Of a stretch of 64,000 nucleotides of DNA, positions 4,371-59,521 are shown in pieces (the stretch's first letter is position 1; each line of letters begins with the position of its first letter). The notes under the pieces were generated by a model, which saw only the letters and a program-made list of their open reading frames with translations, made no database searches and was not told the origin of the DNA. This stretch comes from Selaginella moellendorffii (Eukaryota > Plantae > Lycopodiophyta), in NCBI RefSeq assembly GCF_000143415.4, contig NW_003314264.1:1318733-1382732 (forward strand), given 5' to 3'. The translations under genes and the position numbers were made by a program.

Positions 4371-4392
4371 TAATACAGACTGTTGGTCCCCC

Positions 4393-5330
4393 AGGGGGGG
4401 GGGGCTGTAAGGGGTTCCAAAAGTATAGTAGGGAGAGTGTGGGGGTTGAACTTTAGTGGAATTAGTTTAGCTAGGAAGGGCTAATGTAGCCCAAAAAGGC
4501 TATACTCATGTATTGGGTGATGATATAACCATTGGGAAGTCCAAGGTTAGAGTGAATACGAATAGACAAGTGGGGTAGTTTAGTGAAGTGTTCAAAAACC
4601 AGCTCTAACTCCCTCGACAGATCGAATGGTCAATGCTCATAGTCCAAGTGTGGGTGGCACTATTTACTTGGATACCTAGCGTGACTCATAAGAACCTCGC
4701 TTTAGCCACTTGGCTAGGGCACCCAAAGGTAGATGGTGGGAAGAGTACCCACGGGGCTCGTGTAGGGTTGCAATGTTTCGAAATATTGTCCCAGAGTTCT
4801 AGACTGTGGAAAGGAAGAGGACTAATCCACTTATGTGGTGACCAAGGATGCAGTCATATAACAAGAAAGTCCTAGATGTCAATGAGACATAGTGGTTGGG
4901 CCTGTGAGCCTTGACCCAATGATAGTATTGGCAAACATAGCCATGGACGGAAAGAGACTTAGTAGGGACTGAAAAAGGGATATTAGAGAAGGTTGTTCCC
5001 TAGTCTATGAACATCCCAAGGATGCTAAGGAGTGGATTTGGGATGATCACTCATAAACAGATGGCCCAGTCTTTGAGAGATGGGACTGTGATGTAGGTGG
5101 TGTTGGACCATTAGTGTGACAAAAATGAAGGGGCAAAGCCTTAGTGTAACGGGCTGATATGTTGGTGGTACCTTAGGGTGTCAGTTATGGGATTGAACAC
5201 GTGGAGCACTTGGACCAAGTGCAAAGGTTAAGTGGTATAAATGCTATTGTTGGGACTAGCAAGTCCCCAAGTCCGTAATAAAACTTATGGAGGTTGAGAG
5301 TGAAACTCTTCCACGTGGTTGAAGTTGTGG
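4393..5330 (+). mobile_element. PPT and start of a second LTR type (family B)
   Basis: Poly-G tract 4393-4404, then TGTAAGGGGTTCCAAAAGTATAGTAGGG from 4406. The same PPT/terminus occurs inverted at ~22420-22455. Confidence 0.6.
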
Positions 5331-7139
5331 TTAAGTGACTAAAGTAGAATAGAAAAATTAGTTACTTGGCAACAATAAAAAAATAGAATAAATATCATAA
5401 GGGCTAACAAACACCTATTCATATGAACTATTGCACTAGCTAGTTTGAATAATTCTTAATTAACATCACTAAAGAACTCAAGTTGCCTAAGCAAGTGTCA
5501 GTAACATCCTACCAATATCTCAAACCTAAGAGACCAATTCAAAGCAAACCACAAAGAAAGAATATATAATAATGTGCAAAGCCAAAAGCCATAAAAAAAA
5601 TGATTAACCATCACTAAGATTGTCAATCACTTTATCATGAGAGATGCATAATCATCGTTTGAAGAACAATTTACCATCCCAAAGAATAATAAACTATCCA
5701 TCACCAATAATAATCAAGCAAGATCTTTAATAAAGATAATCAATTATTTGAAATGATGATCAATCATCACCAATGATCACTAAATGTAAACACTAATTTA
5801 AACATTGGAACTAATGGGCTAAAATGCCTTTCCCAACTTTTAACAAATGGATTAATAAGCATCAAAAGTTCAAAGAAGCTTATAACTAAGTATCATTTAA
5901 TAATGATTACAAGTCTTATATGAACAAACTTCAATATTGAAGAAGAAATCATAGTACAACCCATAATATCTTCCTCAACACATCCATAAGCTAAACTTTG
6001 TAATGCAAAAGCTAATAAAAAATATATTTGCATCAATCCAAAAGCCAAGCATAACAAAGCTATACATAACAAGTGGTCATCAAACAAATCCCCTATAAAT
6101 CCATCTTCTATAATTAGACATAACTCACTTCATAATAAGAAGAATTATCAATGATCGATATATCCTCAATTCAAAACCAACAAAGATCCAACTCTAATCA
6201 ATTACTGACTCTTTATTTTATAAAGCTAGCATAGTCCATGATTAAATCATTTTTCAAAGAAACATTAAAATTTACCCTCTATTAAAATAATGTCATCTAG
6301 AACACATCTAACAGAATTTGCCACTCAATTCATTTGAATGACAATAAAGTTATTAACTAACTAAATGAACGAATGCCAATGATATAAAAGTATGGCTAAA
6401 CTATCAACACTATCTTCATTGAAACTAATGAAACAAAATGTTAATCTCCAATAAGCCCAACTAATCACCAACCATCTGTATCACTATAGATGGAAAATTA
6501 ACTTCCTTAATATGCTTATGGAGAAACATTTTATTTCACTATAATCTCAATGTCAAGAATGTCAAAGTCAAAGTATCAATTTAACATCATCAACACTAGA
6601 ACAAAGCTAGTAGAAAGCAAGAGCAAATTACCACTCAATACTCTTTTAGCAACTAAGCTAATTAAAGTTAAAGATACTTTATTGTATCTGAGACCAAACC
6701 TTTAATAATATAAATAACATATCATTAGGGAGTAAATCACCACATCCAAAACTCAATACAATCCAACACCATAGACTCAATATAACTAAATAATATTAAT
6801 ATGGATGAATTGATATGCCCACAGGGAAAATCTATACAAGCTCAACAACACGATCCTCTGCAATACCATCTGGTAAACAAGCCCATCATTGCTAAACCAT
6901 GTACTACTTTCTTCCTTGGGATAGAGTAGCTAGAAGAGCTATAATGCATGTTAGCACACATGCACATCCAATGCAGGAAGGAATATAAAGGAGTTTTGTC
7001 AATTGTTTTTGAGATGTTTTGTAAGTAGAGACCATAAGAAACTCATCTACAACTTCAAAACATGTTTAGAAGACTATGCTCAAGGATTTTATTACAAGCA
7101 CCGTACTCAATTTGGATAACTGATAGACTCAACCAAATA

Positions 7140-11120: not shown

Positions 11121-12246
11121 AGGTTGGAACTCTACATCCCAATGCTTCCAGTTTATATATTTTGTTTGCCTTTGTTGAGCCCATTCCAAGGAATCCCTCA
11201 CTAAATTCCAAATGTTGAGTCTTTCCATTGTGAACGCCTCCAATGCAGATAACTCTCCATGATACTCGACCACGCTGAGTTCCACAAAACCTTCAATAGC
11301 TTGCCCATTGATAACTTCCCATGGACTCACCTCGATATTCGAATATAGTGAGTTGTTATAACACATTTCCGCAAGTCCTAAATGACTTACCCAATCGCTT
11401 TGATCTCTAGAGATATAGCATTGCAATTAATCCTCTAGCTGCCTATTCACCCTTCTGTTTGTCCATCTGTCAGGAAGTGTTAGTGCCATCAAACTTGACT
11501 TAATACCTGGTTGTGCTGAATTTCACATGGGTGCGATATTGTCCAGAAGAGTTCTCCAAAACCTACTGGTGAAGATCTTATCTCGATATGAGATAATCTC
11601 TTTTGACCTTCCCTGCACTCAAACCACTTGTTTGAAGAACAACTTCGCCACCTTCCACATCCATTTCCGTTGTGGTGTGTATAAAATGTGCCATCTTCGA
11701 AAACCAGTCCACCACCACGAATATTGCATCAAACCCCTCACTTGGGGGAGTCCTATGATGAAGTCCATCGTAAAACATTTCTACAGACAATTTGGAATTG
11801 AGAGGCTTTGTAACAAGCCCCCACTAGCCTTAGTCACAGCTTTGACCTGCTGACATGTTGGACATGTCTTTACATAGTCTTGGATGTCCTTAGTTATGTC
11901 TGGCCAGTAATACTTCCTCTTGAGTAAGCCCATCGTCTTGGGCACTCTACCATGTCTGCAAGAGGTCCATTATGACACCCTTCTAAGGCTACATTCTTTA
12001 GCTCCCCTTGTGGCATATATACCCTTGTTTATTTATAATAGACAAGTATATTGCGTTCTACATAACCTATCGTCTCTTCTTTAGGTGGCTCCCCTCTTTG
12101 GTGAGCCTCCTACGGTTCCTAATTCCTTAGCAACACTTCTTGTGCTAGACCATTGTTCTCATACGTTGTCCGATCATCATCCCAAAAGGTTGTTGTTGTG
12201 CTCGATATCGCCAACTTCAAGCTTATTGTTCAACTTAGAGCATCTG
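11121..12246 (-). mobile_element. Ty3/gypsy pol remnant: end of RNase H and integrase (host element, 3' part)
   Basis: Peptides FDAIFVVVDWFSKMAHFI and DWVSHLGLAEMCYNNS...SPWEV, interrupted by stops and frameshifts. Confidence 0.9.
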
Positions 12247-13405
12247 TGTCGCGAATGTGACTTCAGGTATCGAAAGTTACCTGTCGGCTAGTCCTTACGG
12301 ACACTCTTACCTTACTGCCACGATGGCAGGAGGTCGGTATTGTTGGACCCTTTGTCAGCCCCTCTTGTTCAAGTGTTAGTAAACTGAACTTTGCATCTGT
12401 ACTTGGCCGGATGAGCATAAGGAAGGAGTTCCTAAGTGTCTATTTAGTTGATCATACTCGGCCTGGCTTGTTAGTTCTCTTTTGCTCTGTCTTGCACTGG
12501 CTTGACAAAAACCCTTGCGTATTGAGATTAGTCCCTCAATATTGCTACATGATAGCTTACCGTGTCTACCAAACACCCTCGCTATCATGCCTTTTGTGTT
12601 AGTCTCATTTCGGTCCCAAATGCTATTTATGGAAAGTGTCCAGATTTGCTCATTTGGCATATTTACATAATGTAGAGATCGTCCTGAACACAATGGTGTT
12701 CGTCCCATGTCCAAATTCGCAATCTAAGGACATTCCATATTTGGTAAGTTTCGAGTTTGTCCCAGAGACTAACTCCTGATACTAAGGGAGGCTTGGGGTG
12801 AAAGCCCAAAGCGTGTGTTCCTCAAGGGGGGGGGGGGGGGGGGGGCTGCTATGGGGGGTTCCAAATATATAGTAGGGATAGTGGGTAGGTCAGGCATGGC
12901 CGACCAATCTGAGGCATAATCTAGCTCCCACTTGCGTGCCTGTCTTTGTTCTGCGTCCGGCTTGGGTTTAAGCCCAAGTTCCACACCATGCTAGCTGGTG
13001 GAGTACCCATATCCTCACATTAGGCCACCGGTATGCCGAAATAGCGCCAGACTCTGTTTGGCTCCATTTTGCGTGCTGGTCCTGGCATTGGGATGCTGGT
13101 TGCTCCAGGACTGTTCCAAGTCGCTCCGGGCCCCTGTCCCTTCACTCCTTGAGCTGTATGCTCGGGAGTTGCTCTGTGGTCCGGTTCCATCACTCCTTAG
13201 CTCCACACTTGGGAGTTTAGCACCGTTCCTTCGTTCAGTGGCCCAAGGCCCTGAACTTCGGGTTCCTATGGACACGTGGCATGGACACGTGGCATGTGAC
13301 ACATGGCATCTGTCACGTGGCACAAAGAGGGTTTAAGTTCTGCTTCGTGGTGTTATCCTATAGTAAATCACCATAGGATAAAGGGTCAAAACCATGTGTG
13401 CTACA
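12247..13405 (+). repeat. 5' LTR
   Basis: TGTCGCGAATG...GTGTGCTACA; direct repeat of 18973-20107. Confidence 0.95.
13271..13321 (+). promoter_or_regulatory. Tandem G-box/ABRE-like motifs (CACGTGGC) within the LTR
   Basis: GACACGTGGC-ATG-GACACGTGGC-ATGT-GACACATGGC-ATCT-GTCACGTGGC. Function is not shown. Confidence 0.5.
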
Positions 13406-18959: not shown

Positions 18960-18972
18960 AAGGGGGGGAGAG
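18960..18972 (+). other. Polypurine tract
   Basis: AAGGGGGGGAGAG immediately before the 3' LTR. Confidence 0.93.
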
Positions 18973-20107
18973 TGTCGCGAATGTGACTTCAGGTATCGAA
19001 AGATACTTGTCAGCCAGTCCTTACGGACACTCTTACCTTACAGCCACAATGGCAGGAGGTCGGTATTGCTGGACCCTTTGTCAGCCCCTCTTGTTCAAGT
19101 GTTGGTAAACTGGACTTTGCATCTGTACTTGGCCGGATGAGCATAAGGAAGGAATTCCTAAGTGTCTATTTAGTTGATCATACTCTGCCCGGCTTGTTAG
19201 TTCTCTTTTGCTCTGTCTTGCACTGGCTTGACAAGAACCCTCGCGTATTGAGATTAGTCCCTCAATATTGCTACATGATAGCTTACCGTGTCTGCCAAAC
19301 ACCCTCCCTATCATGCCCTTTGTGTTAGTCTCATTTCGGTCCCAAATGCTATTTATGGAAAGTGTCCAGATTTGCTCATTTGGCATATCTATGGAATGTA
19401 GAGATCGGCTTGAACACAATGGTGTTCGTCCCATATCCAAATTCGCAATCTAAGGACATTCCATATTTGGTAAGTTTCGAGTTTGTCCTAGAGACTAACT
19501 CTTGATACTAAGGGAGGCTTGGGTGAAAGCCCAAAGCGTGTGTTCCTCAAGGGGGGGGGGGGCTATGGGGGGTTCCAAATGTATAGTAGGGATAGTGGGT
19601 AGGTCGGGCATGGCCGACCAACCTGAGGCATAGTCTAGCTCCTGCTTGCATGCCTGTCTTTGTTCTGCGTCTGACTTGGGTTTAAGCCCAAGTTCCACAC
19701 CATGCTAGCTAGTGGAGTACCCATATCCTCACATTAGACCACCGGTATGCCGAAATAGTGCCAGACTCCATTTGGCTCCGTTTTGCGTGCTGGTCCTGGC
19801 ATTGGGATGCTGGTTGCTCCAGGACTGTTCCAAGTCGCTCCGGGCCCCTGTCCCTTCACTCCTTGAGCTATATGCTTGGGAGTTGCTCTGTGGTCCGGTT
19901 CCATCACTCCTTGGCTCCACACTTGGGAGTTTGGCACCGTTCCTTCGTTCAGTGGCCCAAGGCCCTGAACTTCAGGTTCCTATGGACACATGGCATATGA
20001 CACATGGCATCTGTCACGTGGCACAAAGAGGGTTTAGGTTCCGCTTCGTGGTGTTATCCTATGGTAAAATCACCATAGGATAAAAGGTCAAAACCACGTG
20101 CGCTACA
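18973..20107 (+). repeat. 3' LTR
   Basis: TGTCGCGAATG...GTGCGCTACA. Confidence 0.95.
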
Positions 20108-21850
20108 ATTTGCCACAATGTTGTTCTACCTAAGTTTATACAGAATCTTGCAATCAAACTCAGCTAGAGCATTGGCCCACCGACCTTGTTTTCCTCTTAG
20201 GTCGGGCTATGACAAAAAGTGTTTCGTTGCCACATTATCCATGTAAACTTTGAAGTGCCTCCCAAAGGTAGTGTTGCCACTCCTTGAGTGCCTTGACCAC
20301 TGCAAATAATTCCTTCACATCGGCAGACTAGTTTTGTTGAGCCTTGTCCAACTTCTTTAAAAAGAACACTACTGGATGGTTGTTTTGCTTCAATATTGCG
20401 CCCAATACAAAGTTTGAAGCATCTATTTCTACCTCGAAATCCTTACCAAAGTCTAATAACATCAATACGGGAGCCTTTTTCAACTTCCTTTTGAGGTGGA
20501 CAAATGCCACCTTGTATTCCGCTGTTCATACCATTTTCTCTTTTCCCATTTGGTCCATTGAAGTAGGGCTACTCTCGAATAATGTTTGATAAACTTTTGG
20601 TAGTAATTATATAGCCCCAAAAATGCCCTTACCTCGTGTATATTTGATGGCCATTCCCATTCTTGGATTGTTTGGACCTTCTCAGGGTCCACCTTGAGCT
20701 CGTCCTTGCCCACCACATACCTTTTGTTGAGCAAAGTCACATTTGCTCTCTTTAGCATATAATTAGTGTTCTTTTAGTTTTTCAAACACCTTCACCAAGT
20801 GTTCAGCATGCTCCTCTAGCGTTTCGCTATAGATCAAGATGTCGTCAATGTAGATGACCACGAAATGATCTAGATAGGGTACAAAAATGTGGTTCATTAG
20901 CACTGAGAATGTCACTAGTGCATTGCACAGCCCAAAGGGCATCACTAAAAACTCAAAGCTTCTATATCTTATTTGATAGATTGTCTTCTTGACATCTTCC
21001 TCTAGTAGATCTGGTAGTATTCTTACTTTACATCAATCCTCAAGAAGTATTTTGCCTTTCCCAACTTATCGAATAAGTCTTCAATACTTGGTAAAAGGTA
21101 TTTATTCTTCTTTGTATACTTGTTGAGCAATCAGTAGTCTATACACATGTGCATAAATCCATCTTTTTTTTTCACAAATAACACTAGTGCCCCATATGAT
21201 GACTTGCTCAACCTAACATACCCTTTATCCATCAACTCTTTTAGTTGGTACTTGAGCTCTTCGAGTTCTTTTTTGTCCAAATGATAGGGGGGATGAACCA
21301 CTACCTTAGCACCCTCGACTAGCTCAATTTTATGTTCTATCAGTTATTCGGGTGGTAACCCTGCCAATAACTCTTTCTGCATGGTATTTTGAAATTGGTC
21401 TAACACCCGCTGGATCACTAAAGGTACTTCTTCTGTTCTGGTCTTTTTGTCACTCCTCATTGAGAGTAAGCACAAAAATGCTGCCTTAGTTTTTTTAGTG
21501 AGTTGTTCTCTTGAGGACACCAGATTCAAGCAGGAGTCTTTGGCTTTACATTGCCCTACCTTTAAATCCTAGGCATCCACCTTGGGTCATTCTTCCTAGG
21601 CATTCACCAATACCACAAGGTTTCTACTTTGTCCATGTAGGGCTACCACAAACCGATTGAGCTAATCCATCCCAAAGATCACGTCAAATCCCGCCATGTC
21701 CAATACAGTGAAATCCATATCTACTTTCCATCAAATTTTTCCTTGCCAATTTGCTAGCTTACCTTGTCTATTTGATCACTATGGCCTTGGCCTTAGTTAA
21801 GTTCCCTTACCAAGGTTCCCATCTATTGTACCAGCTCTTACTTGCTCCTA
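20108..21850 (-). mobile_element. Ty3/gypsy pol remnant: protease end, reverse transcriptase, RNase H (host element, 5' part)
   Basis: FDVIFGMD; MPFGLCNA...VVIYIDDILIYS; FEVEIDASNFVLGAILKQ. Many stops. Confidence 0.93.
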
Positions 21851-22455
21851 CTTGGTTTCAGCAACTCACTGCATGGGCAATGGAGCGTTAGCCATCCATC
21901 CACGGATTCCTAAATTCTCTTCCAATCACCCTTCTCAAGTTAGACTGGACTTAAGGTTTTGCTACACTCCCCACAGACACAAGCAGCCAAGCACACCAAG
22001 CCTTTAGGTTCTTAACATCCCTTGGTACAACAAGACTTAATAATAGGACCCTCTAAATCCCAAAGCTTGGGTGCAACACTTGCTTCTGGACATCGGGGGG
22101 AAACACTATGGCTTAACAGCCTAGTATAGTACCCCTACTCCCCCATTTACATCCCAAAGGAAAGGCCCAATCCCCTAGGAAGGGTGAGGACCAATAAATC
22201 GCAAGGGACTCAAGTGGGGCACCACTCCACATGAGTCGGGAGCACCACAGTCAATTTCCCTTCCAAGAGTGGGAGTTGCTCTTTAGCACTTCCTTGGGTG
22301 GCCCCCCTGGCACTACTTGAGTCCCACTTAAAGCCCCTAAGCCCTAGCCTCAACCTCAAGTCAGTTTGGAAGCACCACTGAAGATTTCCTTCAAGACTAG
22401 TTCTTAGACCTCACTATCCCTACTATAGTTTTGGAACCCCTTGCAACCTCCCCCT
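21850..22455 (-). mobile_element. Family-B-like LTR remnant with PPT
   Basis: The minus strand reads AGGGGGAGGT-TGCAAGGGGTTCCAAAACTATAGTAGGG, matching 4393-4433. Confidence 0.55.
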
Positions 22456-25400
22456 AGGAGACACATGCTTTGGAATCTGTTGAGAACCCCATGAGCATTC
22501 CCTTGCAGCATCTCCTATAGAGAACAGCCAATAACGCTATGAAATATGTTGTCATAATAGATTTTTGTTGTGTCTAAATGCTCAACCCAGTCGCATTGGT
22601 CCACCACAACATAGTACCATAGATAATCCTCAACTTGAGCATTTACACATTCAGTCTACCCATCAGTTTGAGGATGATAAGTTATACTAAACTTCAACTT
22701 CATATCGAACAATTGTAACAATATGCCCCAAAACTTTTTTGTATATCTCGAATCTTTATCCAAGATTATCTCTTTGAGAAGACCACAAATCTGTACTACT
22801 TCATGGAAAAAGAGCTTTATTGCTTGCTTCGCATTCACTATTTTCATAGTTGGAATGAAGTGTGCAATTTTTGACAATCAATCCAAAACCACCATCAAAG
22901 TATCATAACCCTTAGACTTCGACAAGCAAGTGATAAAATCAAGTGTCATACTCTAAAATGGCTATACTGGTGCTGGATTGCATTACAACTTTCTAGCCTG
23001 CTTCTCAATTATTTACTTACACTGTTGGCATATAGGGCAATAATGGATATAATTTGCTACATCACTTTCCATACCAGACTAGAAAAATCCCTTTTTCAAT
23101 GAAGAAAAAGTCTTGAATCACCATGTCCCGCTGCCAAAACATCATGATGTTCCCACAGAAACAACTATCACAAATCCTTAGATGAAAGATACAATCTTTC
23201 TTACTTATAGAAAATAAGCCGGTCATAAACTGAGAAGTGAAGCTTTACATTGGCACGACTAGTAACTTTTGCCACTTTGCTACTAGAGTTCTACTTCAAC
23301 AACTCTTCACAATGCAAGATTGCCATTGCCAACGAATCACTTCCATATGAAGCCTGAACGTCCAACCAGTTTGAACTGATTGTAGATATTGCCCGAAATT
23401 AAGCATAATGACTTAACGCATCCAAAACAATATTGTCTTTACTAAGTTTATAGATGATTTTAATATCAAATCTAGTAAACTTCTCTTGCCAACAAGCTTA
23501 CTTCGGTGTAAGCTTTAGCTATGTAGCAAAGTAGTTTAGTGTGTTGTTATCTATATAAACCTTGGTATGTCCACCCAAATAGTGTCTCTAGTGTTCCAAT
23601 GCTAACACTATAGCAAATATTTCTTTCTCATGCGTTGGCCATCTTCATTGGGTTTCATCCAATTTCTTGGAATAAAATACAATGGGATAATTGTGTTGCT
23701 TAGCATAACACTAACCATATTATTGCAATCTTGCTACAATACTGCACGTATAACATAGCCAGATGCATCATAATGCACTTCAAAGGGTTTATCAAAATCT
23801 AAGATCCTAAGAACAGGAACCATAATCAAGATCTCCTTTAACCATACAAAAACACACTAATAAACTGGTGTCTAATGAAACAGTATACTACTCTTTGTTA
23901 ACTCAATCAACAGAAGAGCAATACTTGCAAAATTGCGAATAAACTTGTGACAATTTCCCACCAAACCAACAAAGGAATGAACATCTAATACAATGGTTGG
24001 GACTTCCTAAAACTTCATCACTTCCACCTTCTTTGGATCTACCTCAATTACACCACCACCGACTATATGCCCAAGAAAATTCACACACAATTGTCTAAAA
24101 GCATATTTACTTTCTTTAGTATACAGTTTGTGTTCACGCAACTTTTGAAACACCAACTCCAAGTGTTTCAAATGATCCTCCAATGTTTCACTGAAAACTA
24201 GAATATCGTCAATATATAGAATAACAAATGTGTCCAAATAATCTTTGAATATTCTATCCATCATCTTGTTAAATGTTGTTAGAGCATTATATAACCCAAA
24301 TGGCATGAGAAGGAACTTATAGGATCTGTATTAAGTCTTAAAGGTTGTCTTCTCCACATTCTAATCTGCCACTCGTATCTGATGATACCCAGACCATAAA
24401 TCAAATCATATAAAATACTTAAGCAAGTCATCTTATGGAGCATCGGTCCTTTTTGTTATGAAAAAGGATAGTACCAAAAGGATGTGTATTGATTATCAAG
24501 CACTCAACAAAATCACAATAAAAAACAATTATCCTTTACCTCTCATTGATGACTTGTTTGACCAACTTAAAGGCTAGTCAGATATGACCTTTCCGTGAGT
24601 TTCTTCTTGAGTTTAGAATGTTCAAACAATATAGAGTCTTCATAGGTGGTTAAGAACTTAAAACAATCTCAATCTAATGACTAACCTCATAGCTAGGAGG
24701 TAGTTCTGGTGGCAAATTTTCATTCTATCCTCATTCTCCTCCAACAACTTCAATATTTCCTTTGGTATAGGATCAACCTCATCACCGATTGAATTGAGTC
24801 ACCATCACCCTTAGCTTCCAGTACTACTCCTTAAGCTTGCTAAGTGCCAACTCAATCATTATAAGCATCTTATCCTTAACGATGTGTGCAGGCTGGGCAA
24901 TAGCATACACTTGAACCCAAAAGGTTTGACGTCCCTTAGTTGCTTTTTGAGTGGCTCTTGCAGTCATGAACTTAGCCTTTGAAAAGTGCTTTTACAAATG
25001 GAAGGACACATTAGGACATTCTTTTGACCTCAACGTGATGCAACTTTGTTCAGCACCATAAATCCCTTTTATATATTTATGAAGAAATCCATACCAAACA
25101 CCATCTAAAAATCTGGTATCTTCAACATTACCAAGTTTAATTTTTCTTTCCACTTGGATATTTTTATTAGAACATCACTCACAAATCTTCTAGCTACTTG
25201 CCCACCTTCCGCAAACCGGAAGTGTATTCAATCCTAACAACTTTATTAAGTTTTCGGATATTATGCTGTGCATAGCTCTTATGTCAATTATCACTCAGAT
25301 TTAGTGTCCGTAGACAAAGGTTACCAGATGCATCAACGAATCAATGTTTGCATTGACTATGAGAAAATCTTGAGGAAAGTAACGGAAGTAACTCACCTCC

Positions 25401-29159: not shown

Positions 29160-30270
29160 AGAAAATGATTCAAGATATGAATTATAAGGGTTTAAATATA
29201 GAAGGAAAGGGCCCATAAACAACAATGCACCTCTTTTTACAATTAGTTAAAGGTGTTGAGCTACCTGGGGTTGAGCATAAATAGTATTGATCTCAAGAAG
29301 TCCAAATTTATGAATTTACATATGGTATTAAAGGGGTTTTAGACTATTGGTTTGCTAAGAGAATCATATTAAATGTTGAGATTGACATCTAGTAAGTCCA
29401 GTTTGCCAAATTTGTTTCACAAATTCTCGATCTCAACATCTCAACAAATTGTGCTAAACATCGTTTAACACCATTTTGCATGGAAGTGCTAGATATGGGG
29501 AGTTGATGCTCATGGGATTGAGAGTGTACTAGACCTTCATTTTGTAGTGCAACAGACTTGGAGTTGGGCTTAAAATTTAAGTGCACTATATTTGGTATTA
29601 AAAGAATTGTCTCAACGATTCCTATCCAACTTTTGTCATAATTTTTAACTCAAGTTACATACACAAGGAATTTTCTAATTCCAAAGTGAACTATGTAGGA
29701 TTAGTTAGATTGCACCATTCGATAAAAACATTATATGCATGTTTAGTTATTGATAAAGGCATACATACAACTAGTAATATGGTGAAAAGAAATTGTGCTA
29801 ATGATTTTGAAACCTTTAGACCGGCGAATCAAGAGGAGGAAACTCCTACTAGAGATGCTACAGAAGAGGTTGAGGTTGAGTCAAAAGAGGAAAAGCCTAA
29901 TACTGCAGTATTATAATGTTTCTCTCAATCCCACGAGCATCAACTCCTCATATCCAGCACTTCCATGCAAAATGGTGTTAGATGATGTTTAGCACAATTT
30001 CAGCATAGTGCCATAACACAAGGAGAAGGGTACCCCACCAACTAAAGTAGCATGGATTTTGGGTTTAGACCCAAGCCAAATGTAGAATAAGTAACGATAC
30101 AACTTAGCAAAAGCTAAACTAATGTCTTAAATAGTCGGCCATAGAACCAACTTACCTATTATCCCTACTATACATTTGAAACCCCCCACAACCCCCCATG
30201 GCCATTAAAAGGAAACTAGCAATATCAACCTCCTACTGTCATAGTAGTAAGGAAAGAATATCTAAAGCAC
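29160..30270. mobile_element. Mosaic of LTR/TRIM-like remnants in both orientations
   Basis: LTR end plus a degenerate PBS (TTTGGTATTAAAAG, ~29591) on +, and an LTR piece on - at 29930-30200. Homologous to 49606-51291. Confidence 0.65.
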
Positions 30271-30612
30271 GCAAATTGTCTAGCCATAAATGTTGTAATT
30301 CCAATATATAGTGGCTGTAAAACCTGAAAAGCCACTTGTGTGGCTTCAGGTGTGAGCCTCAAGACCAAATAAGAGAAAGTAGCAAACTTGATCTCTGATT
30401 GCAGCAGAAATCTGGAAGGCCATTGCTATAGCAAGTATTCCCAGAATGGTTATAGAAATCAACATCAACCATTACCATGGAAAGATACAGTGAAAAATGA
30501 GTGATAAAAAAGACCTTCACAATGGCAATGGCAATGTGGCTCCCTACTAAGGGTGGGGCCCAAGAAGTCTGTCCAGAACAGAAAGTACAAATTACAGTTT
30601 TTTAATAATTTC

Positions 30613-33435
30613 TCAAATTGCATCTTTAGGAACAAACATTGCCTCAAACAGCCATGAATCAACAAAAGCCAAGATGTTATCTTTACCGATAACACCAAAC
30701 AAGGCTTTTGTGCCCAAATTCTTCTTTTCACTTCTTCTAATAGAAATTTGACTACTGCATGCTTCGTCCCTCAAATAGAGGTTACATAGCTGCTTCTTCA
30801 GATTGACAAAGTCTGTAGAAACCACCAGTTTAATACACCCATTACGAGCTAACTCTCGAAGGGAGTTAGCACCAGCAACTTCAATTGGGGTCAGTGAACT
30901 CTTGTGTTGGAAAAGCTTGTTCAGATCCAAGTTATAAAAAGCATTATTGACAGTACCCTACAATAAAAGAAAAAAGTCAAATTACATCAAAAAGATGACA
31001 TGTTGCTTACCTGGTAAAGCGACTTATTTGTCTCAACTTGCACAAGAACGGGAATAAGGGTCATCGGGTGTTGCTGCTGCAAGGTGGAGCAAGCAGGGTC
31101 AGTCTCTGAAACTTGTCCTTGATCATCTCCATCTCCCTCCGACATGTCTAGGAAAAACAAGGCGTCTGGCCCAAATCCGGATTCTCCTGTCCATAGAACG
31201 GATGGGAAGACGTCCCTCTCCTTGACAGCATTGATGTACTCCTGCAAAGTATATCTTGATGCGTTGACATCATGCACATCCGAGCCTTTACTATGCTCGT
31301 GTCTCATCTGCGCCACTTGTTCACTGTGGATCCTTGGTTTCACAAGCTTCGCTCTTCTGGTGTAGATTTCCGGAATCTCTAGCTTATGTGAAGTGACCGT
31401 GTACACACCATCTTGAAGAAACCTAGAGATCAAATTTGCAGGTTGCATCCCGTCCATTGCTTTTGCAATCATCTCCACTGCAATCATTTCGTATCCGTGC
31501 CCAATTCCGCTATAATCAGTATCAGCTATACTCGATAAGCCTGCTGGTTCGCCAACTGTTAAATAGTGCCACAAAGAATGGAGAACAAGAGGCTCCTCAA
31601 TACGCAGTAGAACGTTCCCTGTGTCTAATCCTCCCTTCGAAGATTCCAAATCTTGCATTTCAAGCGTCCGACGGCCATCCAACCTTGCTAGTCCGTAGTG
31701 AATTAAACTCAAGCTGGGGTTCTTGACGGCAGCATCCAATCCATAGAACTGATGGAAGAGTATAAGACTCAGTTTTTCGAGAGCCAGGGGATGCTTCCGA
31801 AAAAAGTCTTTTACACTTCTGTAGACTGTTCTGTCAAGAAAAGGCGAACTCCGTCCCAAAGTGTTAACTGCCATTGGCCTGTACTCTCTAGTAGAAACCT
31901 CGTTGGCGTATTCGACAAAGTAAGCAGTTGCTTTGCTGAGCGGTAGCTTTTCAGAAATAAACGATTCTAATGCTGAAACGAAAAACCTATACCGCCCCTT
32001 GTATAACTGGAAGACCATGTGAAAATCCACCTGTGATGTATCTTTAAGGATCCGACTAGCATAATCCTTCAGGTCGGCCTCCTCATAAAATCCCCCAAAG
32101 TGACAGAACACTGCCACTGAAAATCTCTGTTTGAGTGTAGCAGAAATATTGCGTGCAACAGAAACCATACTTCCTCCTGTACCAGAATAGTAGATCGTGC
32201 TTGTGCGAAACCCAGCATCGAACAACGCCGGCACAAACACATCCAAAAGAGATCTTGTTCTTGACCCAGCTGTAGGTGAATCAAACCTATTCACCAAGGT
32301 GTCCTGCACCACCTGGCATTCGTCGAGTATAATCGGCCCACTCCAGTCCCTCTTGTGTGTCTCGATCAAACGATCAAATACCCCTTCGATCCCACAGTCA
32401 CTGGATACTAACTCGAGTAGTCTATCACTTAGAACGTAGAAAGGGTCATTATGGAAGGGTAGTAACGCAAATCCAACCTGCTTAAACAACCAGTACTTGG
32501 CCCAAACCTGAGGTGGCATGCTTCCTGCTACCTCCTTCAACTTGTCTAGGATGAAGAATCTGCTGAGAAGAACAGCTTTGAAGCAGCACCGCGTCACGCG
32601 CATCGGAATTGACTGGTCTCCTGGATACAGAACCATTAGCCGACTAACCAGCGCATCCAAGTCTGCAGACCCCTCCGATCCAATCCGTCCCATAGGAACA
32701 CCAACAAAATACAGAGCCAAACGGTCCACTGCAATCTCATACAGTGTTCGAGTTTTTCCAGAGCCGGAAACATCGAAAAGGACCACCAGGCCAGGGCGTG
32801 CTATATCCACTTGATCCAGAATGTATTTGGAGGCCCGAAAAGGCTCCTCGAGGCAATGCCAGAGAAGGCAAGGTTTACGACTGTCAGGAGCTTGGGGAAC
32901 CGTCCCTTTGCAAACGTCTGGATAGCTGGCCTTCAAATCGCTTGGCTCAAGAAGTTCTCCATGTATCTCGTTCCATACATGGTCCAAGATACCTTGCACA
33001 TCTGCTTGATCAAGATCAAACACAATGAACACACAAGTAACGCTTCGTCAGTTCACCAGAGAACATCGTAAATCTTACCACAATCAGTGGTAGGAGCTGA
33101 AGGCGCTGCAAAAAAAAATATTTGTCAGCGATGGAAGAACAAGTCAAGACCAAAATCCAATGCCTACCCTTGAGTAAGATAAGCTTTTCTTCCCTCAGCT
33201 GGCTCTCCTTTAGCCTCAGCTGGTTCTCCTTTTGCCTCAGCTGGTTCTCCCTTTTCCGCCAGTACATCTCCTCCTCAGCATCATTTGTTGCCTTGAGCTG
33301 CTCCTCAGCCTCACATATTTGCTTCTCGACTCCCTCTATTTGCCTTTCAAGGCTGAAAATCGGCCCATCCACCGGCATGGGCTCAGATCCACTGCTAACC
33401 CTAGCTATGATGCAAATCAACAGTTCAGATCTCAT
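30613..33435 (-). CDS. Crinkler/CR-type effector-like protein: coiled-coil header + P-loop NTPase + PD-(D/E)xK nuclease-like domain (~876 aa, 4 predicted exons)
   Basis: Exons 33435-33168, 33105-33079, 33001-31011 and 30957-30613 splice in frame at GT-AG (2631 nt). Walker A DVSGSGKT, Walker B PIILDECQ, SGTG, GRYR, GYE...GPDALFF...LVQVE. Header ENQLRQKENQLRLKESQLREEKLILL. Confidence 0.8.
33193..33255 (-). repeat. Three tandem 21-bp units encoding heptads of the coiled-coil header
   Basis: CCTCAGCTGG(C/T)TCTCC(T/C)TTNN x3. Confidence 0.85.
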
Positions 33436-34119
33436 GTGAATATTCCAGAATCAGACTTCTTAAAGAGTAAATTTCACACTCTTACATTCTGGGAAGCATT
33501 AAAATAATCTTTCACACCAGAAATTTTAATATCTGTCAAATCACAAATTTAGTGATTAGGGTTGATAATTGAAATTCTTTATTTGTTATTTTATTGTTTT
33601 ATTAGCTCAATGTGTTATTTCTTTTTTACCAATCGTGTTATTGATTGAATGGATTAAATGGAAAAACCTGAGGTTAGAGTGGAAGATGAAGTATACCTTG
33701 TGGTGGTTATTCTATAATATCTCGATCCTTTTCAGATTTCTCTTCTATTTTTCAACTGTAGTACTCAAAAACATATCTATTCCAAACTAGACTATGTCCT
33801 ATATAACTTTCTCCTATTAAAAATCTTATTAATGTTTCATATAATTAAATTCTGAAAAAGTACATCAGTGGGATTTTTGTGCATGCATAGTGGTGCAATT
33901 CACATCCCTGCCACTATAGTAGTCCATGTTAAATGCAAACTGGAGGCCGTTGCAGGGCTCCAGCCGACTGTGTACAAAGTACAACATGTCTACCAATTAA
34001 ATGTTATATTTCATCTGAGAGTATGGACCAACATTACATTATCAATGAATTTGTTGGTGGTGCGCGCTTGCATGCCTTCGGTTGAAGTTTCACCATCACT
34101 GAACAAAAGCACAATGGTT

Positions 34120-38300: not shown

Positions 38301-38821
38301 CTGATTTGCTTGTCGGACACTCCTTTCTTGTCACCAAGTTCTCGTTCTGTCTCGGCCTAACAAAACAGAAAAAAGAAAACAAATCTCATGAGCTCGCATC
38401 GCAACGATAAGCTTACCTGGATTTCCTTGCGAATGTGTGAGAAATCCGTGAATCTCCGTCCAGGGAGGTGCAAAAACTCCCCCCACTCCGAGAACTCGCG
38501 GTCGTCCATTTTTCTTTGGACGTGAACAAGCTGCAAAACAAGTGGCCGCCGCGTGCAAATGTCGGGACCCCGAGGAAGAAAATCTCGCCCGACGAGCGCT
38601 TCCATGACGCTGGATTTACCGCTGCTCTGGCTCCCCACCACCGCTACCTGCGGCAGATCCACTGTGGAGGGACTGCCCAGCTGCGCGAAGATATCCTGGA
38701 GCTTGTTCATGATCGGGATCACGGACTGGCCAAGAAATGCTGGAAGCGCGGTGGGATGTGGAGGCGATCCCGAGCATGGCGACCCAGGAGTGGAGCTGGA
38801 GGGAGTGGATCCCTGCGACAT
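35372..38821 (-). CDS. DRP3: Dynamin-related protein 3 (mitochondrial/peroxisomal fission), multi-exon
   Basis: [49 protein letters not shown] region [27 protein letters not shown]-terminal DSTGLPK. Confidence 0.95.
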
Positions 38822-40636: not shown

Positions 40637-41709
40637 ATGGCCGCTGTTCAGAAGCTCTACGAGGCGTGCAAGATTTCGCTCACCTCCGCCGCCACCGCCA
40701 CCGCCGCGCCATCGCCGCTGGTCGTGAGGAAGATCTGCCACATTCTTGGTAAGGAAATCCTCGTTTTCCCTCGAAATCTCTCCGGGCACTCTCCAAATTC
40801 ACGGCTTTCCTTGCATGCCGCATCGGTCCGAGCAGACGGCATCACTTGCCCCGATGTGGGACTGAGCGAGGAATCGGTGAATCAGCTCAATCGCGGCCTG
40901 GGATTCTTTGGCGGCCAGAGGGGGCGGCACTCGAGCATGGCCGCTCGCTGGGCACCGCCAATCTCTTATCTCCATCTCCACGAGTCCAGCAATTTCTCGG
41001 TGAGTTCCTCGTCTCCTTTTCCTTAGTCGCAAAAGAAAATCGTTTTTTGCTCTCGCGAAGAGAATCAACTGGGATTCTTTCCTTTGCAGTACAGATGGGG
41101 ATTTTTTGTCTGCCAACCTCATCCGCAATTCCTCTCCACGATCATCCGGGAATGACTGTGTTTAGCAGACTCCTCTATGGGACACTACATGTAAGATCTT
41201 ACGACTGGGTCGATAAGCAACCGTGCTCCGATCCATCAAAACGTAAGTTCTCTCTTCTCTCTCTCTTCTCTCTTCTTCTCTTCCAAGTGTTCTAAGGTCG
41301 TTTCTTCCCTTCCTTTTGCAGCTAGACTAGCGAAGCTAGTTCTGGATCAAGTCATGACCGGTCCCTGCGACTCGGTTGTCTTGTATCCCAATTCTGGAGG
41401 CAACATTCACGCCTTCACTGCGATAAACTCGTGCGCCATCCTCGACGTTTTAGCACCGCCATACTGCCCTTCCACCGGTAGGCACTGCACATATTATCGA
41501 GCGTTCCCGTACTCTAGTTTGGCCGGTAAGTCTTCGCAAATTGACCTCTTTCATTGTTTTTCTCAGCTTTTTCGACCTTCGCAGCTGAGATGCACGACGA
41601 TAACAACGATTACGACGACGAAAATTATGTCTACTTGGTCGAATATAAACCCCCGGACGATTTTGTTGTCCAAAATGGCGTGTACACGGGTCCGAAGGTG
41701 AAGCCTTGA
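40637..41709 (+). CDS. PCO: Plant cysteine oxidase (ADO-like cupin)
   Basis: [54 protein letters not shown]-terminal YTGPKV. Confidence 0.95.
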
Positions 41710-53161: not shown

Positions 53162-55410
53162 TCAAATGGCATCTTTATGAACAAACATCCAGCCATGAAT
53201 CAACAAAGCCATTATTATGCCGGGATCCACTTTCATCTTCTTTTCACCTCTTCTAATAGAAACTTGACTGCTGTATGCTTCCTCCCTCAAATAGAGGTTA
53301 CACCAGAATGACAAAGTCTGTAGAAACCCAGAGTTTAATACACCCATTACGAGATAACTCTCGTTAGCACCAGCTACTTGAATGTACTCTTGTGTTGGGA
53401 AAACTTGTTCAGATCCAAGTAAAAAGCACTACCCTACAATAAAAGGAAAACTTCAAATTACATTACCTGGTAAAGTGTCTTACTTGTCTTAACTTGCACA
53501 AGAACGGGAATAAGGGTCATCGGGTGTTGCTGCTGCGAAGCAGTGTCAGTCTCTGAGACTTAACCACAATCTCCCTAGGAACTCTCACCTGACATATCTA
53601 AGAAAAACAGGCGTCTGACCCAAATCCGGTGTTGACAGCATGCACATTCGAGCCTTGTGTCTCATCTGCGCCATCTGTTCACTGTGGATCCTTGGTTTCA
53701 CAATCTTGGCTGGAATCTCTAACTCATGTGAAGTGACCGTGTACACATCATCTTGAAGAAACCTAGAGATCAAATTTGCAGGTTGCATCCCATCCATTGC
53801 TTTTGCAATCATCTCCACTGCAATCATTTCGTATCCGTCCCCAATTCCGCTGCTTCTTGACTGGGCGTTATAACCGTAAGCAGTCCTGATGGTTCGCCAA
53901 CTTCTAAATAGTGCCACAAAAAATGGAGAACAAGAGGCTCCTCAATACGCAGTAGCACTTTTGCTGTGTCTGACCCTTCCGTCAAAGAATCCAAATCTTG
54001 CACTTCAAGCGTCCCATAGGCATGCAACCTTGCAAGTCCGTATTGAATCAAACCCTCTTGACATGCTTCCTAAAAAAGTCCTACACACTTTTGTAGGAAA
54101 TGGCGAACTCCGTCCCAAAGTGTTAACTGCCATTGGCCTGTACTCTCGTATTCAACAAAGTAAGCAGTTGCTTTGCTGCGGTAACTTTTCAGAAATAAAC
54201 GATTTTAATTGCAGTGTTTATGCGACGCTCAAACAGAGTGTGCGAAACCCAGCCATCAAACAACGCTAAAAACCCATCCAAAAGAGATCTTGTTATTGAC
54301 AGGTGAATCAAACCTATTAACCAAGTTGTCCTGCACCACCTGGCATTCGTCGTCCGTCTTAATCAAACGATCAAATACCTCCTCGATCCCACAGTCACTG
54401 GATATTAACTCAAGTAGTTTAACATTTAGAACGCCATCTCTCCCCACACGGTCAGCTCGGGGATACAATAGCTCACTTAGTTCTGCCAGGAAGTGAAATC
54501 CAACCTACTTAAACAACCAGTATTTGGCCCAAACCTGAAGTGGCATGCTTCTTGTTAGGGACAAATGCATATCACCCCCCTCTTTTACGTAACTACCCTT
54601 TTGCCACGCCCACTCCTCACTGAATTGTGCTTTCTACCCTCCTGTGCTACCTCCTTCAACTTGTCTAGGATGAAGAATCTGCTGAGGAGAACAGCTTTGA
54701 AGCAGCACCATGTCACGTGCATCGGAATTGACTGGTTTCCTGGATACAGAACCATTAGCGGCATCTAAGCCTGCGGAGCCCTCCATTCCAATCCGTCCCA
54801 TAGGAACAAGATACAGAGCCGAACGGTCCACTGCAATCTGAGTCTTTCCAGGGCCAGAAACATCGAAAAGTACCACCAGGCCAGGGTGTGTTATGTCCAC
54901 TTGATCCAGAATGTATGTGGAGGCAGGCAATGCCAGAGAAGGCAAGGTTTAGGACTGTCAGGAGCTTGGAAAACCGTCCCTTTTGCAAACGTCTGGATAG
55001 CTGGCTTTAAAATCACTCGGCTTAGCAAGTACTTGATCTGCTCTATGTATTTGGTTCCATACTTGTCCAAGAGAGCTTGCACATCTCGATGGACGGCATT
55101 GTAGCGATCCAGCAGCAGCGTCAACAAGATCAAACAATTAAGCTTTGAACGAGCACATAGAAGGCAAGGAGACCAATGAACACACAAGTAACCAGATCCA
55201 CAAGGAAGCACACGTAAGTAAAGGGCAAGGGCAGTAGGCGTTGCAAAAACAAAATTTGTCAGAACAAGCCAAGACCAAACCTTTGAGTAGGATAAGCTTT
55301 TCTTCCCTCAGCCGGCCCTCCTTCTTCCTCAGCTGGTCCTCTTTTTTCTGCCAATACTGCTGCTCCTCAACCTCACATATTTGCCTCTATTTGCCTTTCG
55401 ATCGAATATT
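53162..55410 (-). pseudogene. Decayed paralog of the CR-type NTPase-nuclease gene
   Basis: Collinear DNA similarity to 30613-33450 including introns. Many deletions, frameshifts and small insertions. Peptides GYEMIAVEMIAKAMDGMQPANLISRFLQD and DECQVVQD. Confidence 0.92.
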
Positions 55411-55748: not shown

Positions 55749-56845
55749 CTAGCGCCGGCACACCATTCCCCTGCTTCCGTCCCCGCTGTGACACTCCATT
55801 GACGGCAAAGCCATCCCTGCCTTGCTCTTCATCTCAATCACATCCTCGCCGGCACCGAGCTGTGCTGCGGATTCCTGGAACCGCGACACCTCGCAATCGG
55901 AGTTGAAGAGCGATGACACCGCGAATCGCTTCTCCCCGCCCATGACGGGCATGGCGACGCCGATCTTCACCCGGCTCCGGAACCCCGCCGCGTACGTCTG
56001 GCCGAGCACCCCGTGCACGTCGCGCGACAGATCCCCAAACTTGAAATTCACCTCGAGGTGCGCGAAGCAATCGTCGGCCGTGATGTCGTAGCGGTGGACG
56101 CGCGATTCCTCCGCGGTGATGGGCACCACCCTCACCACCGCGCGGAAGCTCCCGGGCCTCTCCACCGCGATGGCATTGGCGAGCGCAATGCGCGAGATCT
56201 TGAGGTCCCCAGCAGAGGGGAACTCCACCGCCGAGCCCTGCCCCGCCGGGACGAGGACGGGGCTCTCGTCCAGCGCTATGGAGATGTGATCCACGGAATC
56301 GTCCCAGATCGAGGCCCTCTTGGCGCCCACGTAGAGCTTGTGGCTGCCAAACATGATCCCGAGCGCCTGGACCCAGGTGAAATCGCGCGTGGATCCGGCC
56401 CTGTTCTTGCCGATGAAGTGCGCATTGATGTGGAGATCTCTGTCCGAGACCAGGCAGAAATCCTTGTCCTTCTTGCCGTGGAAGTAGAACATTATCCCGT
56501 CGCCGCCGATGAATCGTGGGTCCTGGCACACCGCTCCCGGCTTGTCACACGCTGGATCATCTCAATCGAATCGAATGGGCCACACAGACGAGAGAAACGA
56601 GATCAGATTCGCGACAGCAGCAGAGAGAGGGACTCGTGAGGGTTAGAAGACCCACCGCAAATCGGCTTGCAAAACTTGCAATCGACCTGGCACGCCTTGG
56701 GGCATCCCGCGGGGCATTTGTGGACGACGCCATAGCAGGCCTTGAAGAAGGGATCCGAGCAGCTCGCGGACCAGGCGCGAGCGCCATGGATCGAGCAAAA
56801 CAACAGCGCGATCGCCACACCCAGCACCACTGCCGCTCTCGCCAT
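55749..56845 (-). CDS. Root-cap / LEA-related secreted protein (2 exons)
   Basis: Signal peptide, Cys-rich CPAGCPKACQVDC, CQDPRFIGGDGIMFYFHGKKDKDFCLVSD, VHGVLGQTY, C-terminal GMVCRR. Confidence 0.95.
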
Positions 56846-58704: not shown

Positions 58705-59396
58705 AACGCCGCGAAGAAACTTGGGATCGAGAGACGAGAAAACTGGAGACGCCGTCCCAGAGAAAGCGAAAGAAGGAGAAGAAGAAGAGAACCAAGAAGT
58801 TCTAGCTGGAATCTCCAAGCAGAGACATTTTTGATAAAACCAACACAAAATAATTCACAAAGGAAAGCTCTGCCGGCTTTCATGATCCATGCTCGTCGTG
58901 CCTTTTTCCACAGATGCAGCTGAAAAGTTCAGTCTTTCTCCAGAAACGCAAGCGAGCAAATCAAATCAAGTGCGAGACGTATTTCATGTGTAGTGCTCCT
59001 GGAGTGAAGGCTTTTGACCCGTCATTCTTTCCCTCCCACCTCGTGCTCTTTAGAGTTTTGTCAAGCTTGGATGTCGCTCTCTCTCTTTCGTTTTCTCGAT
59101 CGAGGACCCGGGCCCGAGAAGTTTGCTGTGGTTTTGCTGCGTTTAGAAAACGTGGAATCCTGGTGGCCGTCACTCGCGGGAAAGGAAAAAGGAACGTTTT
59201 TTTTGTTCCCTTTTTTCTGGCTCAGGGGATCAAGAAAAAATGGGTAGTCGGCGACAAGCACTTCCATGTCGTGATTCACTCGAACTAGCAGAAAGTTATT
59301 TGATTCTTGGGCTCTAGAATCATTCCTCCAGCGCTTGCATGCCTCCGGATTCATTGCCTCTATTCTTCCATTCATTCATTCATTTTTTCTGGAGCG

Positions 59397-59486
59397 ATGT
59401 CGACGGATTTGGAGACGGGTGGTCTCGCTGGATCGGATCAAAGCCACCCAAAATCGAGCACAACGCGATGGGTAAAATCGGTGAGT

Positions 59487-59521
<35 letters not shown>

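Follow-up and report, generated by a model that had tools for sequence, protein, structure and literature searches.

A Selaginella moellendorffii gene of the Crinkler/RHS-like NTPase-nuclease family with a glutamate at the conserved lysine position of its predicted nuclease domain

Crinkler/RHS-like (CR) proteins often combine an NTPase with a nuclease-type domain: in the account of Zhang et al. 2016 given by Amaro et al. 2017 (PMC5289972), an NTPase followed by a helix-turn-helix (HTH) and a restriction-endonuclease (REase) domain is the commonest C-terminus of Crinkler and CR proteins, which also occur in land plants. The same account (Zhang et al. 2016 via Amaro et al. 2017, PMC5289972) has the REase specifying toxicity and the NTPase regulating it, and a study of Rhizophagus describes REase, NTPase and helix-hairpin-helix (HhH) domains in secreted Crinklers on the basis of the predictions of Zhang et al. 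2016. Here we analyse LOC9643429, a gene at positions 30613-33435 of a 64,000-nucleotide stretch of the lycophyte Selaginella moellendorffii (RefSeq assembly GCF_000143415.4, contig NW_003314264.1, positions 1,318,733 to 1,382,732; hereafter the window, to whose first letter all coordinates refer). We assign a probability of roughly 0.6 to the reading that LOC9643429 is a CR-family gene of a lycophyte and fern clade, belonging to a family of NTP-gated, DNA-directed nucleases, and that this copy is transcribed, spliced and most likely nuclease-impaired.

Joining exons from the list of open reading frames (ORFs), which includes three long ones on the minus strand here, and from the sequence itself places the gene on that strand in four exons, with GT..AG at 3/3 introns and a coding sequence of 2631 nt that holds no internal stop and a single terminal one. 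The resulting 876-residue protein is identical over 876/876 residues (100%) to XP_002963600.2 (P0085 in our searches), listed for S. moellendorffii as "uncharacterized protein LOC9643429", and the uninterrupted four-exon frame of about 876 residues that the initial annotation had assembled from the letters alone thus stands. LOC9643429 is accordingly a host gene already annotated, as uncharacterized; an older GenBank model, EFJ35471.1, comprises 857 residues and begins at Met20. From N- to C-terminus the protein is arranged as a coiled coil, an AAA+/STAND-like P-loop NTPase, a winged helix and a predicted Mrr-like REase fold that bears the family signature GxxFE...GPD...QxK with the last position altered.

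The NTPase is the most firmly modelled part of the protein. Its motifs comprise a Walker A DVSGSGKTR (aa 175-183), a Walker B ILDECQ (aa 323), SGTG (aa 371) and GRYRF (aa 434), and an alignment of 55 sequences shows near-invariant GSGKT(R), hhhDE-Q, SGTG, GRxRF and EP(L)V, followed by GxxFE, GPD and QxK, with the Glu of EPLV (E568) invariant in 44/44 sequences. AlphaFold2, run on residues 90-470 with the family alignment, returned a model with a predicted local distance difference test (pLDDT) score of 90.5, which in exhaustive structural comparison (VIA) matched Avs5 (Z 12.1), Orc1/Cdc6 (11.2-11.4), NRC2 (11.1), TnsC (10.8-11.0), ZAR1 (10.3), Avs4 (10.1) and MuB (9.9), in agreement with Foldseek. 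The Walker A, Walker B and downstream Arg motifs lie on an ASCE core, and a helical and winged-helix region follows, as is usual for STAND and AAA+ proteins; on residues ~26-150 of the model of the C-terminal segment, VIA retrieved 3h92 (Z 5.2) and the winged helices of WRR4A (386-506), ORC and Rio2. A P-loop core followed by helical and winged-helix elements is common to Orc1/Cdc6, the defence proteins Avs4 and Avs5, the plant NLRs NRC2 and ZAR1, and the transposition ATPases TnsC and MuB, at Z 10-12 over 170-250 residues, and because initiator, STAND and transposition ATPases tie in Z we name the domain AAA+/STAND-like and nothing finer. In the Avs proteins the switch is likewise fused to a nuclease effector, as the predicted architecture of LOC9643429 would have it. 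The LOC9643429 protein differs from the STAND, NLR and transposition ATPases, groups that Z values do not separate, by having neither a leucine-rich repeat (LRR), TPR or WD40 sensor nor a partner transposase. At the sequence level, the NTPase profile matched PDB sequences over the Walker A stretch only, and neither NB-ARC, NACHT nor AAA families rose above the Pfam cutoff in the protein or the exon translations. We rejected identity as a plant NLR: Pfam reports no NB-ARC or LRR, the C-terminus adopts a predicted nuclease fold, and NLR structures do not outscore ORC or TnsC.

For the C-terminal region, AlphaFold modelled residues 440-876 with a pLDDT of 74.7 and a predicted template modelling (pTM) score of 0.74, and the order of its secondary-structure elements fits the αβββαβ core of PD-(D/E)xK nucleases. 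Foldseek against the PDB gave no match at E <= 0.001, its top rows being MspJI, HamA, Cap4 and FokI, of which the best (MspJI and HamA) reached E 0.05-0.6, and an exhaustive VIA search was therefore needed for the assignment. About 30 of the top 50 matches in that search were PD-(D/E)xK nucleases, all aligned to model residues ~158-430, led by PaqCI (Z 6.8), MspJI (6.6), AF1548 (6.5), FokI (6.3) and Can2 (5.9) and including BspD6I, AspBHI, NucS, LlaBIII, HamA, CdiA-CT, Cap4, the Avs4 N-domain, NucC and McrC. In the model the signature residues take up the expected geometry, with the Glu at a helix start, the Asp at a strand start and Q-x-K on the next strand, and an Atlas shape search returned Mrr_cat and Crinkler-domain clusters. 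With the αβββαβ core moderately supported by the AlphaFold model and VIA Z values of 4-6.8, the consistency of the VIA list and the fit of the motif positions make the REase-fold assignment reasonably safe despite moderate single Z values. The predicted domain shares the αβββαβ core, a Glu on helix 1, an Asp at a strand start and Q-x-K on the strand after it with PaqCI, MspJI, FokI and AspBHI as well as with HamA, Can2, Cap4 and the Avs4 N-domain (Z 4.4-6.8 over 105-136 residues); it differs from these Mrr-like REases and defence nucleases in lacking detectable sequence similarity, in a large acidic insertion that separates the strand of GPD from that of QxK, and in the missing Lys. The initial annotation had quoted the NTPase motifs DVSGSGKTR, hhhDE, SGTG and GR.R, all of which are present, had described a C-terminal E...GPD...QxE/K module, which corresponds to E603 (GYE), G-P-D711 and Q753-V-E755, and had expected an REase fold at aa ~590-800, close to which the model places one at aa ~597-870; it had also named an NLR family as a best match that would speak against a CR protein, and Pfam shows no NB-ARC or LRR.

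The core of the LOC9643429 protein is, judging from the alignments, a true homologue of the C-terminal module found in Crinkler-headed proteins and not just a look-alike. Its NTPase retrieves Rhizophagus proteins P0023 and P0081 by phmmer at E 1.6e-21 and ~29% identity, and P0023 carries the Crinkler ubiquitin-like (Ubl) domain PF20147 with a score of 37.5 bits where the cutoff is 24.6. The family profile further matches Linnemannia hyalina P0094 at E 1.1e-68, a protein whose residues 5-109 form a full Crinkler domain (E 8.6e-28), and hhalign places the C-terminal profile, which P0094 had not entered, on P0094 residues 462-844 with 99.7% probability and E 6e-26 over 351 columns, with EP, GxxWE, GPD and QxK in register. 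A language-model Atlas search likewise returned a cluster labelled 'Crinkler family protein' as one of the neighbours. The NTPase, winged helix and REase fold are thus collinear with and homologous to those of the R. irregularis and L. hyalina CR proteins, and share with them GSGKT, hhhDE-Q, SGTG, GRxRF, EP, GxxFE and GPD, which upholds the proposal of a CR-type NTPase and nuclease core; the LOC9643429 protein differs from Crinkler-headed relatives in having no Ubl/LxLFLAK header and no sign of secretion, in being plant-encoded and in carrying Glu for the QxK Lys. Measured against what marks a CR protein, homology to PF20147 bearers therefore extends over both the NTPase and the HTH and REase module, and the N-terminal header is what is missing.

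That header had been proposed in the initial annotation on the strength of an E/K/Q-rich coiled coil, which is indeed there: residues ~25-90 consist to 52% of E, K, Q and R and include three 7-residue QLR repeats. The Crinkler Ubl domain (PF20147, with its LxLFLAK header) is absent from the Pfam search of the protein and the exon translations even at E values up to 1, and the close paralogs start with MASGSEP and have no hydrophobic leader. Members of the family bear Crinkler Ubl, SAM, CBM20 or CCCH zinc-finger domains or a coiled coil at this end, and we therefore regard the N-terminus as the variable part and the rest as the conserved core. A ratio of nonsynonymous to synonymous substitution rates (dN/dS) of ~1 or more between paralogs in the coiled coil marks the N-terminus, in turn, as fast-evolving and length-variable. 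In the coiled-coil repeat block itself (33186-33286, minus strand) LOC9643429 and its twin copy, described below, differ by 14 mismatches and 34 gap columns.

A word-indexed search returned S. moellendorffii proteins only, the closest (P0001 and P0002) at 90-91% identity and further subfamilies at 30-41%; an exhaustive search of 1.84 billion representatives yielded 68 proteins at E <= 0.001, and a full-length alignment profile run against a 5.8-billion-protein set added one more. Among the named members are plants (Selaginella and the ferns Adiantum capillus-veneris and A. nelumboides), fungi (Rhizophagus and Cetraspora of the Glomeromycota, the chytrid Rhizophlyctis and the basidiomycete Hysterangium), the amoebozoans Endostelium and Soliformovum and the diatom Nitzschia. 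In an unrooted IQ-TREE phylogeny of the NTPase domain (50 rows, 18 of them without taxon label, quick search, rows shorter than 250 residues left out), 14 Selaginella representatives, Adiantum capillus-veneris and one unlabelled transcript form one clade with Shimodaira-Hasegawa-like approximate likelihood ratio test (SH-aLRT) support of 99, apart from the Glomeromycota clade. This well-supported clade argues against recent transfer from fungi, and the tree fits presence in early vascular plants followed by expansion in Selaginella. The fern protein P0033 of A. nelumboides (901 aa), which has a CCCH zinc finger, falls into the Glomeromycota-type clade and not into the plant clade; it may stem from a lineage of its own, from an old transfer or from contamination with fungal DNA. 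Separately, the P0038 cluster of S. moellendorffii (LOC112348765-112348771) forms a further, distant subfamily whose loci, numbered consecutively on one scaffold, may make up a tandem array.

What sets LOC9643429 apart within this family is a single residue of the predicted active site. Among 44 aligned sequences, the column of E603 (E164 in the alignment) holds Glu in 38, that of D711 (D272) Asp in 42 and that of Q753 (Q314) Gln in 42, whereas the basic column of QxK (position 316, equivalent to residue 755) holds Lys in 39, Arg in 4 and Glu in one, and the single Glu is that of LOC9643429. The close paralogs P0001, P0002, P0090, P0091 and P0093 read QVK; P0085, P0086 and P0087 read QVE. The signature E...(P)D...(D/E/Q)xK is therefore incomplete, with E603, D711 and Q753 kept and Glu at 755, and the initial annotation, which had flagged the QxE/K oddity and allowed for a pseudo-nuclease, was right to do so, this being the sole Glu among the 44. 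Since 43/44 relatives keep Lys or Arg here, nuclease activity is doubtful and the LOC9643429 copy is most likely impaired in it; its ATPase motifs are intact. The copy would accordingly be either a regulatory, non-catalytic variant or one on its way to decay, two outcomes that these data do not separate.

RNA evidence was drawn from the interval 30300-34000 in two stranded RNA-seq runs of 2026 (X23 and X24) and in Logan contigs of two older runs, at a likeness of at least 97%. All read pairs over LOC9643429 have one orientation, which fits minus-strand RNA, and 3/3 junctions occur in the stranded reads (30956/31010, 33001/33079 and 33105/33168), each bounded by CT..AC when read on the plus strand. 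An X1 contig of 2305 nt from an independent study joins exon 4 to exon 3 and shows 3 differences across 1993 nt of exon 3; it is of window type through that exon including the Glu755 codon, with nothing listed at 31034 and the 3 differences elsewhere. Window-type alleles make up ~5-50% at diagnostic sites, and ~100 reads per run are at least 99% alike. From the window-type contig, the junctions and the allele shares it follows that a transcript of LOC9643429 or its twin is made and spliced, at an apparent abundance below that of the QVK paralogs, and the spliced transcripts that the initial annotation had called for are thus at hand, with all three junctions in reads and a spliced contig.

The twin (P0087, SELMODRAFT_438404) lies inverted on the same scaffold (L002:10001-12766 of GL377568.1), ~6 kb before the window start and 34 kb from LOC9643429. 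The two copies are 100% identical from ~33390 to 30590 (~2.8 kb), all introns and exons 2-4 included, and differ only in the exon-1 coiled-coil repeat block and the flanks, where identity fades gradually; such identity, introns included, points to gene conversion within the inverted pair or else to duplication in the very recent past. Against more distant copies, Nei-Gojobori dN/dS is 0.40-0.44 for LOC9643429 versus L001 and L003, compared with 0.47 for L001 versus L003, and falls between 0.28 and 0.51 for the NTPase, winged-helix and REase domains taken singly. These values, distinct from the ~1 across paralogs that would have told against the initial annotation, point to moderate constraint on the gene, with the coiled coil evolving freely. 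Dozens of family copies and fragments populate the S. moellendorffii genome in tandem and inverted arrangements; one decayed paralog lies within the window, and its sole annotation consists of the fragments SELMODRAFT_404915 and SELMODRAFT_404919 (P0019 and P0017).

Several observations weigh against reading LOC9643429 as a functional member of a nuclease family whose own nuclease is impaired. The REase-fold matches are moderate (Z below 7, Foldseek E above 0.01), the C-terminal profile found no match among PDB sequences and a single-sequence search of the PDB only noise, and Pfam gave noise only on all 44 C-terminal segments and no family for the full protein or its exon translations. Most raw reads over the gene carry alleles of the QVK paralog L003 (P0091 type), as variant positions compared with the paralog loci reveal, and are therefore cross-mapped; expression of LOC9643429 itself is low or uncertain, its RNA being indistinguishable from that of the twin outside exon 1. 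No reads lie further upstream than ~33391, leaving ATG 33435 without RNA support, and reads that cross ~33391 run on into the paralogs' ATGGCGTC start. As that ATG is also out of frame in the twin and the MASGSEP start of close paralogs has been lost in LOC9643429, Met20 (33378-33376) is a likelier start codon than ATG 33435, from which the initial annotation had begun the protein. Between the twins, finally, dN/dS is 0.83 on 11 differences, all in exon 1, which are too few to show constraint since the K-to-E change, and a Glu at the 'Lys' position is not always fatal to a PD-(D/E)xK enzyme, BamHI having E-x-E.

Much of this bears on whether LOC9643429 could be a young functionless copy, its frame intact only through recent duplication or gene conversion with the twin, transcribed by inertia and showing in the loss of its start and its Lys the first lesions of decay. 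The replacement of a basic residue conserved in 43/44 sequences, the disappearance of the ancestral ATG (MASGSEP) along with an upstream ATG out of frame in the twin, the minority of window-type alleles at many diagnostic RNA sites, a decayed paralog 20 kb away with many annotated family fragments elsewhere in the genome, and twins that diverge in exon 1 alone would all be expected of such a copy. We nevertheless hold it to be unlikely, if worth serious consideration, in view of an ORF of 857-876 codons without stop or frameshift, intact splice sites throughout, the retention of the NTPase motifs and of E603, D711 and Q753, a dN/dS against QVK paralogs of ~0.4 that equals the one between two QVK paralogs, and the spliced window-type transcript found in an independent study. 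The converse, that Q-x-E leaves the protein a fully active NTP-gated nuclease which serves plant defence or cell death like the QVK paralogs, draws on the intact NTPase and remaining catalytic-site residues, on transcription and splicing, and on the precedent of PD-(D/E)xK enzymes in which the place of Lys is taken by an acidic or neutral residue (E-x-E in BamHI, E-x-Q in BglII). It appears improbable to us, as the position is K or R in 43/44 sequences across fungi, amoebae, diatoms and plants, and the first position of the motif is already Q and not D/E, so that Q-x-E would lack both usual features.

We give slightly less weight still to a selfish mobile element, in which the gene would be cargo or enzyme of a spreading 3.3-kb unit and not serve its host. 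Dozens of tandem and inverted copies and fragments, homology between copies that is limited to the gene and a few hundred bp, an NTPase resembling TnsC and MuB (Z 9.9-11.0) about as well as ORC or STAND proteins, and the transposon origin proposed for CR modules (Zhang et al. 2016 via Amaro et al. 2017, PMC5289972) fit this idea; homology boundaries that differ between copies and fade gradually, spliceosomal introns common to paralogs and a dN/dS of ~0.4 do not, nor does a search around the gene, where terminal repeats, whether inverted or direct, were absent from the borders of the unit and only an unrelated pair resembling a miniature inverted-repeat transposable element (MITE) turned up downstream, or a Pfam search that found no transposase or integrase domain. 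For the same reasons, no flanking repeats and no transposase domain by Pfam, the locus does not resemble a Tn7-like module (TnsC with TnsA), the sole link being that its NTPase resembles TnsC and MuB in structure. Recent horizontal gene transfer (HGT) from fungi, arbuscular mycorrhizal or otherwise, or contamination of the assembly with fungal DNA, might be suspected from the fact that the nearest named non-plant relatives belong to root-symbiotic Glomeromycota (Rhizophagus, Cetraspora), and is highly improbable given a position among plant genes on a 4.34-Mb scaffold, introns common to the paralogs, the Selaginella and Adiantum clade (SH-aLRT 99) apart from Glomeromycota, and an identity to fungal proteins of ~29% only. 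We rejected contamination and recent HGT on the grounds of plant neighbours, introns and plant clade, in keeping with the plant origin claimed by the initial annotation, for which phylogeny had been named as the test.

Table 1. Coordinates of the LOC9643429 exons and encoded domains and of neighbouring features in the window
Feature	Position	Strand	Remarks
Exon 1	33435-33168	-	from RefSeq ATG 33435; Met20 (33378-33376) as alternative start; coiled coil rich in E/K/Q, including three 7-aa QLR repeats; donor junction 33168|33105 in RNA
Exon 2	33105-33079	-	27-nt micro-exon, linker APSAPTTDC; junctions 33105/33168 and 33001/33079 in X23, X24 and X1
Exon 3	33001-31011	-	1991 nt; NTPase, winged helix and most of the predicted REase-fold domain; covered by the 2305-nt X1 contig
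Exon 4	30957-30613	-	stop codon included; C-terminal part of the predicted REase-fold domain; junction 30956/31010 in RNA
AAA+/STAND-like P-loop NTPase domain, aa ~100-470	32999-31887	-	K181 at 32756-32754, D325-E326 at 32324-32319, then SGTG and GRYRF; model pLDDT 90.5
Helical and winged-helix region, aa ~466-590	31901-31527	-	E568-P569 (EPLV) at 31595-31590; winged-helix matches by VIA
Predicted PD-(D/E)xK, Mrr-like fold domain, aa ~597-876	31508-30616	-	E603 at 31490-31488, D711 at 31166-31164, Q753 at 31040-31038, E755 at 31034-31032 (Lys in relatives)
Dynamin-family gene, exon-sized ORF	38357-38821	-	Pfam
PCO/ADO cysteine oxidase, exon-sized ORF	40846-41295	+	Pfam
Decayed paralog, NTPase-nuclease family	53165-55400	-	frameshifts and stops; tblastn segments in several frames; fragmented ORFs; 70-84% DNA identity to intact copies
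Root_cap protein, exon-sized ORF	55749-56531	-	Pfam
KUP/HAK K+ transporter, exon-sized ORFs	59307-62007	+	Pfam

LOC9643429 lies on scaffold GL377568.1 (4.34 Mb): the first 6546 bases of the window (1-6546) coincide exactly with the end of locus L002 of this scaffold, which puts the window at about 1,318,733-1,382,732 of it. The ordinary plant genes nearby (Table 1: dynamin, PCO/ADO, Root_cap and KUP/HAK) mark the stretch as genuine plant DNA. The initial annotation had described the sequence on both sides as decayed, which is right in part only: one decayed paralog is present, and ordinary plant genes adjoin. Its further argument, that an intact gene between decayed flanks is a sign of selection, does not hold, the neighbours being normal genes and an inverted twin being 100% identical over ~2.8 kb. 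Dispersed repeats with 66-88% identity at 3822-5360, 12050-12883, 18971-19597 and 20108-22473 recur near the paralog loci L001 and L002 and are presumably transposable-element families. Some 600 bp downstream of the gene, a pair of 79-nt inverted repeats (29446-29524 and 29922-30000, 94% complementary, 397 nt apart) looks like a small MITE-like element unrelated to LOC9643429, which it does not flank.

For the family as a whole we infer a mechanism in which a DNA-directed nuclease would be gated by an NTPase that binds and hydrolyses nucleotide and probably also oligomerises. The REase domain would act as effector and the NTPase as nucleotide-dependent switch or assembly module, the winged helix would bind nucleic acid and position the nuclease on it, and the whole module may serve genetic conflict or defence. 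LOC9643429 and its twin, with Glu755 and preserved ATPase motifs, would then be nuclease-impaired, whether as non-catalytic variants or at the start of decay. A bolder proposal, to which we attach little credence, is that the products of the QVE twins are dead partners that might co-assemble through coiled coil and NTPase with active QVK paralogs and restrain or redirect their nuclease, thereby acting as a brake on a lycophyte and fern cell-death or immune module; such a putative QVE/QVK brake would be built like the bacterial Avs-type systems and be comparable to PsCRN63 and PsCRN115, which Amaro et al. (PMC5289972) mention as an opposing pair among oomycete Crinklers.

LOC9643429 is an ordinary addition to a known family, the gene being already annotated and land-plant CR proteins already published, and the main yield of this work is a confident domain annotation for the "uncharacterized" RefSeq protein XP_002963600.2. 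The copy is probably not the best family member for studying nuclease activity. If plant CR-type proteins are real NTP-gated nucleases, however, the natural QVK and QVE paralog pairs of one genome would offer a ready-made comparison of active and inactive forms, and early vascular plants would have retained a module for immunity or conflict, known elsewhere from pathogen effectors and similar to bacterial STAND-nuclease defence.

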